DNA of 63,048 nucleotides, filler included, from Olpidium bornovanus S191 (taxonomy: Eukaryota > Fungi > Olpidiomycota), in assembly GCA_017911155.1 (NCBI GenBank). It is 31 parts of 31 records of this genome, joined end to end, with 100 filler letters (N's around TTAATTAATTAA, not from the genome) between each part and the next. Parts side by side here need not be neighbours in the genome. Positions count along the whole stretch, not along the records: positions 45,715 to 46,820 come from JAEFCI010012500.1; 30 more parts are not named here. One strand, given 5' to 3'. The notes beneath the pieces are model-generated. The model worked only from the letters and a program-made list of their open reading frames with translations, made no database searches and was not told the origin of the DNA. Numbering within the stretch: position 1 is the first letter of the stretch; the number at the start of each line of letters is the position of its first letter. A program made the position numbers and the translations under genes. Positions 45,615-46,820 of this stretch are shown one piece after another.

Positions 45615-45715
45615 NNNNNNNNNNNNNNNNNNNNNNNNNNNNNNNNNNNNNNNNNNNNTTAATTAATTAANNNNNNNNNNNNNNNNNNNNNNNNNNNNNN
45701 NNNNNNNNNNNNNNC

Positions 45716-46820
45716 TGGACCTCCGTTGAAGAAGAGAGCTTCTGTTCTTTGAAGGCGCACCTGGCCTCTGCTCCTGTCGTTACTCACCCCGATCCGTCGC
45801 GCACCTTCGAGCTCGCAGTCGATGCCGGTCCACGCGCGATTTCCGGCAATCTGTATCAACGCGACGACTCCGGCCACCACAGGGTGTGCTACTATGGCAG
45901 TTGGAAGCTCTCGCGGACAGAGCAGAACTACAGTCAGCCAGAACGGGAATGTCTCGCAGTTGTCAGTTCCTGTCGCGAATACCACCCGTTTTTTTTAAAC
46001 TCTCCTTTTGTTCTGTGGACCGACTGTACGGCGATCGTTGATTTGATCAAGAAGCCCGACCTCTCCGGCAAGTTCGCCCGTTGGGTCATGTTTCTTGCCG
46101 ACTTTCCCTTCGAATGTCGTCAAGGCAGTGCAGCTCGCCACCGTGATGCAGATGCACTTTCTCGCCTCGTCGCCGAGCAGGAGGAGGAGGAGGATGCCGA
46201 GGATGCCGCCGCGTCGGATCATTTGGATGCCGCTGCGTTGGATCGTTTGGATCGTTTGCTCGACAACGGCGTCGAGGACAACGTTCTTTGCGGCCTCAAC
46301 AACAACAGCGCCGCGTTGGATCGTTTGCCTGCGTCATCATATCGTTTGGCATATCGTTTTATGTCGGATCACTCGCTCGACGACGCCTTCGAAGAAGGAC
46401 ACGGAAACGACGTCAAGGACAAAGTTCTTTTGCCGCTAAGTGATGACATCGGGGGCAGGCTTCGCCCCCCTGATGGAAGTGTTGTTCCAATGCCGGAGCC
46501 TCTTGTCTCTTCAGTGGCCTATCGCCCGCCTCTCCCTGACGACGCTTCGTCGTTCCTCGCTTCACGTTTGCACACTACTGATTGGAAGCTGCACCCCGCC
46601 TGGTTCGCAGCTTTAGATGTCTGTTGGGGTCCACATACTATCGATCTTTTCGCGTCTGCCCGTAACCGCCAGCTTCCCCGGTATGCCTCGCTCAAGCCAG
46701 AGGCCGACGCCGTCGCTACAGACGCCTTCTCTCTCAACTGGTCGGTCGAAAACGGATGGGCCAACCCTCCTTTCGAGTCCGCCACGTTCTGGCGCATCCT
46801 GAACAAGGTCAAGTCTGAAG
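45716..46820 (+). mobile_element. Retroelement pol fragment: Ty3/gypsy-type RT connection and RNase H fused to a Dam-family N6-adenine methyltransferase
   Basis: One open frame spans the whole contig: W..EEESF..LK..L..APV..HPD..FELAVDA..NYSQPERECLAVV..WTDC..ARW..DADALSR, a 138-aa linker, then DWKL..F..L..WGPHTIDLFAS..DAF..W..NPPF. Confidence 0.85.

Follow-up and report, generated by a model that had tools for sequence, protein, structure and literature searches.

The window analysed here is a stretch of 63,048 nucleotides from Olpidium bornovanus S191, and one piece of it (45715-46820) is the subject of this report. The piece holds a single stop-free frame of 368 codons (45716-46819, plus strand), while each of the five remaining frames is broken by 6 to 13 stops; the initial annotation had put the frame at about 368 codons, which our reading confirms, and every motif that it quoted was found again in its place (Table 1). 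At its upstream end the ORF is cut by the edge of the piece. It encodes, in order, the C-terminal (connection) part of a reverse transcriptase (RT) together with an RNase H (RH), an acidic linker, and the beginning of an N6-adenine methyltransferase (MT) domain.

Table 1. Features of the stop-free frame, in window coordinates.
Feature	Position	Strand	Details and basis
RT C-terminal part (connection) and Ty3-type RNase H	45716..46168	+	aa 1-151; PF17919 and PF17917 (Pfam), alignment with Ty3 7q5b/4ol8
RNase H motifs	VDAG 45818; ERECLAVV 45941; WTDC 46016; DADALSR 46145	+	motif coordinates
Acidic RH-MT linker, poorly conserved	46169..46579	+	137 aa, aa 152-288; composition
In-frame short tandem repeats in the linker	46175..46258	+	GAG x6.7; 9 bp x2.1; 24 bp x2.2; 9 bp x2.3 (Tandem Repeats Finder)
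N-terminal ~80 residues of a retroelement DAM / PCIF1-like N6-adenine methyltransferase domain	46580..46819	+	aa 289-368; Pfam Dam, alignments with DIRS and gypsy MTs
MT motifs	IDLFAS 46640-46657; DAF 46721-46729; NPPF 46763-46774 (ANPPF 46760-46774)		domain starts with DWKL

In the RNase H part of the frame, the Pfam family RT_RNaseH_2 (PF17919) matches aa 1-99 with an E-value of 5.7e-26 and RT_RNaseH (PF17917) matches aa 26-130 with an E-value of 2.8e-25, and a phmmer search against the PDB returned the Ty3 RT/RNase H structures 7q5b and 4ol8 at E ~1e-7. When aligned with these two structures, their catalytic columns D, E, D and D are occupied by D35 (in VDAG), E76 (ERE), D103 (WTDC) and D146 (DADALSR), in agreement with the initial annotation, which had counted all four acidic positions as present. 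The RNases H of DIRS elements belong to another class, with TDAS..GWG motifs; the RT_RNaseH profile that scores strongly in the piece is weak or absent in DIRS proteins, and a BLASTP comparison of the piece's RNase H with the DIRS RNase H of protein P0161 gave no detectable similarity (E 0.27). The identity to the RNase H of P0151, a metagenomic polyprotein that is taken up below, is 29%. The Ty3/gypsy type proposed earlier is thus upheld by the HMM scan, with both profiles at E ~1e-25, and by the empty BLASTP comparison with the DIRS domain; on its sequence, we assign the RNase H to the Ty3/gypsy type and not to the DIRS type.

The MT domain is cut by the end of the piece after about 80 of its ~150 residues, and the intact methyltransferase of the initial annotation is in this respect not borne out. 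In an alignment with DIRS and gypsy MT domains all of the near-invariant columns are present in the piece, as is the Asn-Pro-Pro-aromatic catalytic pocket (ANPPF). The Pfam family Dam (PF05869) matches aa 290-359 over profile positions 12-75 of 169 (E 4e-4), with the cut-short domain scoring 20.5 bits, below the gathering cut-off of 28.1; PCIF1_WW is nearly equal to it with 17 bits (E 0.0045), and a protein-atlas look-up gave weak leads to both families (PCIF1_WW 0.86, Dam 0.80). In P0104, a relative in which the MT domain is complete, Dam reaches 47.8 bits and PCIF1 has no match at E <= 0.01. Since the piece's own Dam match lies below the gathering score, the assignment to the Dam family rests on the alignment with relatives; the earlier description as a Dam-family enzyme holds by that route. 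Contigs from runs X2, X3 and X5 share a common continuation after 46818, which is in frame, free of stops for at least 10 codons, and similar to the strand that comes after the NPPF helix of relatives (..ITLLIP..). As to the motif itself, the soil-metagenome copy of run X2 reads NPAF (C>G at window 46769), while in P0151, a polyprotein that is otherwise intact, CPPW replaces NPPW at residue ~692.

The piece comes from a short-read assembly of a repeat, and in runs other than X1 no single contig spans 46512-46622; both points could be taken to mean that the join of RNase H and MT is an assembly artefact fusing two repeats. We find this barely credible. In run X1, a Logan contig of 6434 b, possibly the source assembly itself, contains the entire piece on the minus strand at its bases 966-2071, with zero differences and no joint, and extends 965 b further downstream. 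Soil-metagenome contigs are 93-96% identical to pieces of the RNase H end, the linker and the MT. A second contig of Olpidium bornovanus S191 (JAEFCI010001238.1, L001 in what follows) repeats the order RH-linker-MT across the same junctions with ~80% nucleotide identity throughout, and the same order is found in other DAM-LTRs, the gypsy elements with an MT that are discussed below. Taken together, these sequences speak for a real, recurrent retroelement lineage and not for an artefact; the chimeric lineage that had been proposed from the piece alone is met with again in L001, P0151, P0088 and P0104.

L001 is also the closest relative of the piece (72-77% protein identity), aligning over RNase H, linker and MT, and it is the sole other copy of the subfamily seen across all three. 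It is decayed: a single in-frame stop interrupts the MT, and there are two frameshifts; when it is read frame by frame, the MT is followed by Integrase_H2C2 and then by an rve core with its D, D and E. In GenBank this decayed retrotransposon copy appears as the gene model BJ554DRAFT_2207 (P0001, 509 aa; L001:1-2156), in which predicted introns bridge the damage and remove the first half of the MT. Two metagenomic proteins from Logan assemblies, P0151 (1400 aa) and P0088 (1376 aa), carry PR-RT-RH(Ty3)-Dam-rve in one ORF, and P0104 combines a Ty3-type RNase H with Dam. Judging from these relatives, the integrase (IN) is probably kept in the lineage, placed after the MT, and not replaced by it. 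The DEDD RNase H of the piece and the pol order of its relatives, PR-RT-RH-...-IN with H2C2 and DDE parts, are those of Ty3/gypsy elements (Metaviridae, e.g. yeast Ty3), with the difference that an MT of ~150 aa plus a linker sit between RNase H and IN; in ordinary gypsy relatives the distance from RNase H to the zinc finger of IN is ~90-160 aa, and this stretch is without a [ND]PP[FYW] motif. A search for LTRs in the relatives' contigs L002, L005 and L006 (4.5-5.6 kb) found no repeats of at least 30 b.

The order RT-RH-MT has long been known from DIRS elements alone (PMC3783388; PMC6338049), and two further proteins, P0140 and P0161, do have a DIRS-type RNase H (TDAS..GWG) followed by the same MT. 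On the contig that encodes P0140 (L007:639-2557, JGI metagenome 3300012942), the DIRS RNase H and MT are followed by a Phage_integrase ORF, which makes L007 a fragment of a true DIRS element. The closest MT to that of the piece is the one in L007, with 56% identity, while gypsy-borne MTs are 42-51% identical; the piece shares with the DIRS1 group (RT-RH-MT plus tyrosine recombinase) the placement of the MT module downstream of RNase H and the conserved series DWKL..IDLFAS..DAF..NPPF. One might argue from the classical DIRS order and from this top MT likeness that the piece belongs to a DIRS element, or that a fragment of such an element has by chance come to lie in frame inside a gypsy element, and that no gypsy lineage owning its MT is involved. 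We consider this very unlikely, as the RNase H of the piece is of the Ty3 type, and the MT of its relatives has no flanking DIRS RT, tyrosine recombinase or inverted repeats; these relatives have PR and a DDE integrase, and their MT is placed between a gypsy RNase H and a gypsy IN, within a single ORF in the case of P0088 and P0151 and collinearly in L001. Moreover, the junctions are common to the piece and L001 at saturated synonymous divergence, with the MT under purifying selection (see below).

The Ty3-type RNase H, the integrase of the relatives and the likeness of the MT to that of a true DIRS element lead us to a gypsy element in which a DIRS-type MT stands between RNase H and IN. In this preferred reading, the piece is probably an internal pol ORF fragment from an LTR retrotransposon of the Ty3/gypsy group, of the kind called DAM-LTR, whose RT, PR, gag, IN and LTRs would be located beyond the edges of the piece, and it is likely that the element carries a DIRS-type N6-adenine MT module of ~150 aa in frame between RNase H and a DDE integrase that is seen in relatives only. 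As an overall assignment, the identity and architecture of the piece as a gypsy element of this kind seem highly probable to us. This also fits the remark of the initial annotation that the RT-RH-MT order is known from DIRS elements while the RNase H class differs here: the MT is a DIRS-type module, and the RNase H is of the Ty3 type.

Ty3/gypsy elements with DIRS-derived DAM domains have their first description, under the name DAM-LTRs, in a recent preprint, which reports five lineages: two chlorophyte ones and one each from an ichthyosporean, Pyropia and Euglena (Fernandez-Moreno ... de Mendoza, bioRxiv 10.64898/2026.05.21.726589, 22 May 2026). The gypsy architecture RH-MT-IN is already described by that work; the suspicion that similar fusions may already exist proved right, and the publication of May 2026 puts forward the same hypothesis of 6mA and permissive chromatin. 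The piece and its relatives agree with the published elements in their Ty3/gypsy-like pol, in a DIRS-derived DAM with an Asn-Pro-Pro-aromatic pocket, as far as the relatives go in being without a tyrosine recombinase, and in the proposed tie to host 6mA chromatin; the DAM of the published elements lies in the gypsy pol ORF, and the frame of the piece joins RNase H and MT, with IN sharing that ORF, or standing collinear to it, in relatives. They differ in that the published lineages are non-fungal, whereas the nearest relative of the piece is in the fungus Olpidium bornovanus; the text of the preprint, which screened EukProt genomes, names no fungus (bioRxiv 10.64898/2026.05.21.726589). Among the papers searched, none links Dam, Ty3 and fungi. 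We thus regard the piece as a probable fungal (Olpidium-like) member of the DAM-LTRs, if its sequence relationships are a guide.

Another difference from the published elements is the acidic linker in front of the MT, which is unusually long in the piece (137 aa; the initial annotation had 138). Its acidic character, noted earlier as well, is pronounced, with 29 D+E vs 11 K+R and a pI of 4.2, and the in-frame tandem repeats that it contains are the likely source of its expansion. In L001 the linker has undergone big in-frame deletions and is 49% identical to that of the piece, and the linker differences among soil-metagenome copies are mostly non-synonymous; from these comparisons, the linker seems to be nearly free to vary.

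Selection was measured by codon comparison between the piece and the decayed L001. The linker gave pN 0.32 and pS 0.57 (ratio ~0.4, with large indels), the MT gave pN 0.21 and pS 0.72 (ratio ~0.1), and the RNase H gave pN 0.11 and pS 0.80, where pS is saturated. These values indicate that the MT is maintained by purifying selection in the lineage. Of the recent activity or selection that the clean frame had suggested initially, it is selection that finds support, being purifying for both RNase H and MT when compared with L001.

In a tree of the RNases H, the piece and its Olpidium copy L001 group with an MT-less gypsy element, P0053 (support 95/97), and stand apart from the other DAM-LTR RNases H examined, those of P0088, P0151 and P0104. 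A constraint that keeps all MT carriers together in a single RNase H clade costs 19.4 lnL, with an AU p of 0.05, so that such a clade is rejected at the borderline. The MT tree has 12 rows, with ~80 columns that are informative for the piece, and gives no clear answer as to whether the piece groups with the gypsy-borne MTs (61/64 support). An independent capture of the MT by the Olpidium-type element is a plausible possibility.

To look at the fold, the complete MT of P0104 (residues 212-350) was modelled, and the model is a small Rossmann-type methyltransferase with a pLDDT of 90. Its best solved match is PCIF1/CAPAM (mRNA cap m6Am), with a Foldseek TMq of 0.60-0.66 and a VIA Z of 10.2 over 130/139 aligned residues, followed at lower VIA scores by Erm/KsgA (~8), T4 Dam (7.9) and E. 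coli Dam (7.6); the PDB seems to be without a PF05869 member, so a choice between Dam and PCIF1 cannot be made from this fold search. PCIF1 was also the sole sequence match of the MT profile in the PDB, a marginal one (E 0.26), while sequence profiles favour PF05869 over PCIF1 in the better-preserved relatives. The retroelement MT shares with PCIF1/CAPAM the NPPF motif and an F-x-x-FAS-x-x-N stretch; it differs in having the core only, without the WW or helical domain, and with RNase H upstream and, in relatives, IN downstream. Phage and bacterial Dam (PF05869), the Pfam family that matches the MT best, has the N/DPP-aromatic motif in common with it, and the eukaryotic retroelement domain is shorter, being without CD-1 and TR-1 (bioRxiv 10.64898/2026.05.21.726589). 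The origin of the DAM domain has been read as prokaryotic Dam (bioRxiv 10.64898/2026.05.21.726589), and the MT domains of DIRS elements had been placed in the PCIF1 clade and thought probably inactive (Iyer, Zhang and Aravind 2016, PMC4738411); our fold result agrees with the latter placement and is at odds with the former.

With regard to function, our best reading is that the MT would be an active, or at least a selected, module working on the replication intermediates of the element. As in the published model, the MT would be made as part of Pol; it might travel with the reverse-transcription complex and methylate adenines in the nucleic acid of the element itself, either cDNA or the RNA:DNA hybrid. 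In a host with 6mA of the AMT1 type, new insertions may in this way land in, or attract, chromatin that carries 6mA and is permissive for transcription. DAM-LTRs are associated with AMT1-bearing hosts and with higher 6mA and expression on the elements, and the ichthyosporean copies are enriched for 6mA (bioRxiv 10.64898/2026.05.21.726589). An actual adenine methyltransferase activity of the MT on DNA or cDNA seems to us somewhat less likely than not.

It has to be weighed against the view that the MT is not a writer of 6mA on DNA at all, and that it acts in a PCIF1-like manner on RNA, e.g. on the cap-adjacent adenosine of genomic RNA, or is a non-catalytic binder of the RNA template or of the RNA polymerase II machinery, selected for such a role. 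We think this rather unlikely but take it seriously as an alternative, noting that it would sit well with the fold match of the P0104 model, with PCIF1 as the only PDB match of the profile, with the PCIF1_WW match of the piece itself and with the PCIF1-clade assignment of the DIRS MTs (PMC4738411), and less well with the profile score of P0104, which favours Dam, and with the missing WW and helical domains; the weight of the fold match is in turn reduced by the apparent lack of a PF05869 member in the PDB. The published data point in both directions, as no 6mA was detected when DIRS and DAM-LTR domains were put into dam- E. coli, the one heterologous test of such domains in print, while DAM-LTR copies in ichthyosporeans are 6mA-enriched (bioRxiv 10.64898/2026.05.21.726589). 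We also entertain, as a long shot, a combined scenario in which the DAM module is PCIF1-like and methylates the RNA or the RNA:DNA hybrid of the element and not dsDNA, with the Olpidium-type element as a sixth, independent capture by a fungal gypsy element; a module of this kind, acting on RNA or the hybrid, would, if true, explain how purifying selection and the negative dam- E. coli assays can go together.

The genomes of early-diverging fungi belong to those richest in 6mA. To return to the DAM-LTR reading, the DAM-LTR class would reach into Fungi with an Olpidium-type lineage whose MT is under selection, and the element would provide a further, possibly independent, capture with which the link between AMT1 and 6mA can be tested. 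The preference of the fold for PCIF1 over Dam bears on the dispute in the literature over the origin of retroelement MTs, from cellular PCIF1 or prokaryotic Dam, and over their substrate.

A metagenome scan with the piece as query returned nothing beyond distant gypsy RNase H matches (27-28%), and a word-indexed search that took the MT region of P0088 as its query yielded one relative only. Most of the matches with two stretches in a search of representative proteins were rejected as cases of RNase H plus MT, being tandem or nested copies of gypsy RNase H. P0002 (1077 aa), a predicted protein from the latter search, has six consecutive RNase H domains of the Ty3 type, followed by one integrase zinc finger; it represents a tandem array or else a repeat that was assembled wrongly.
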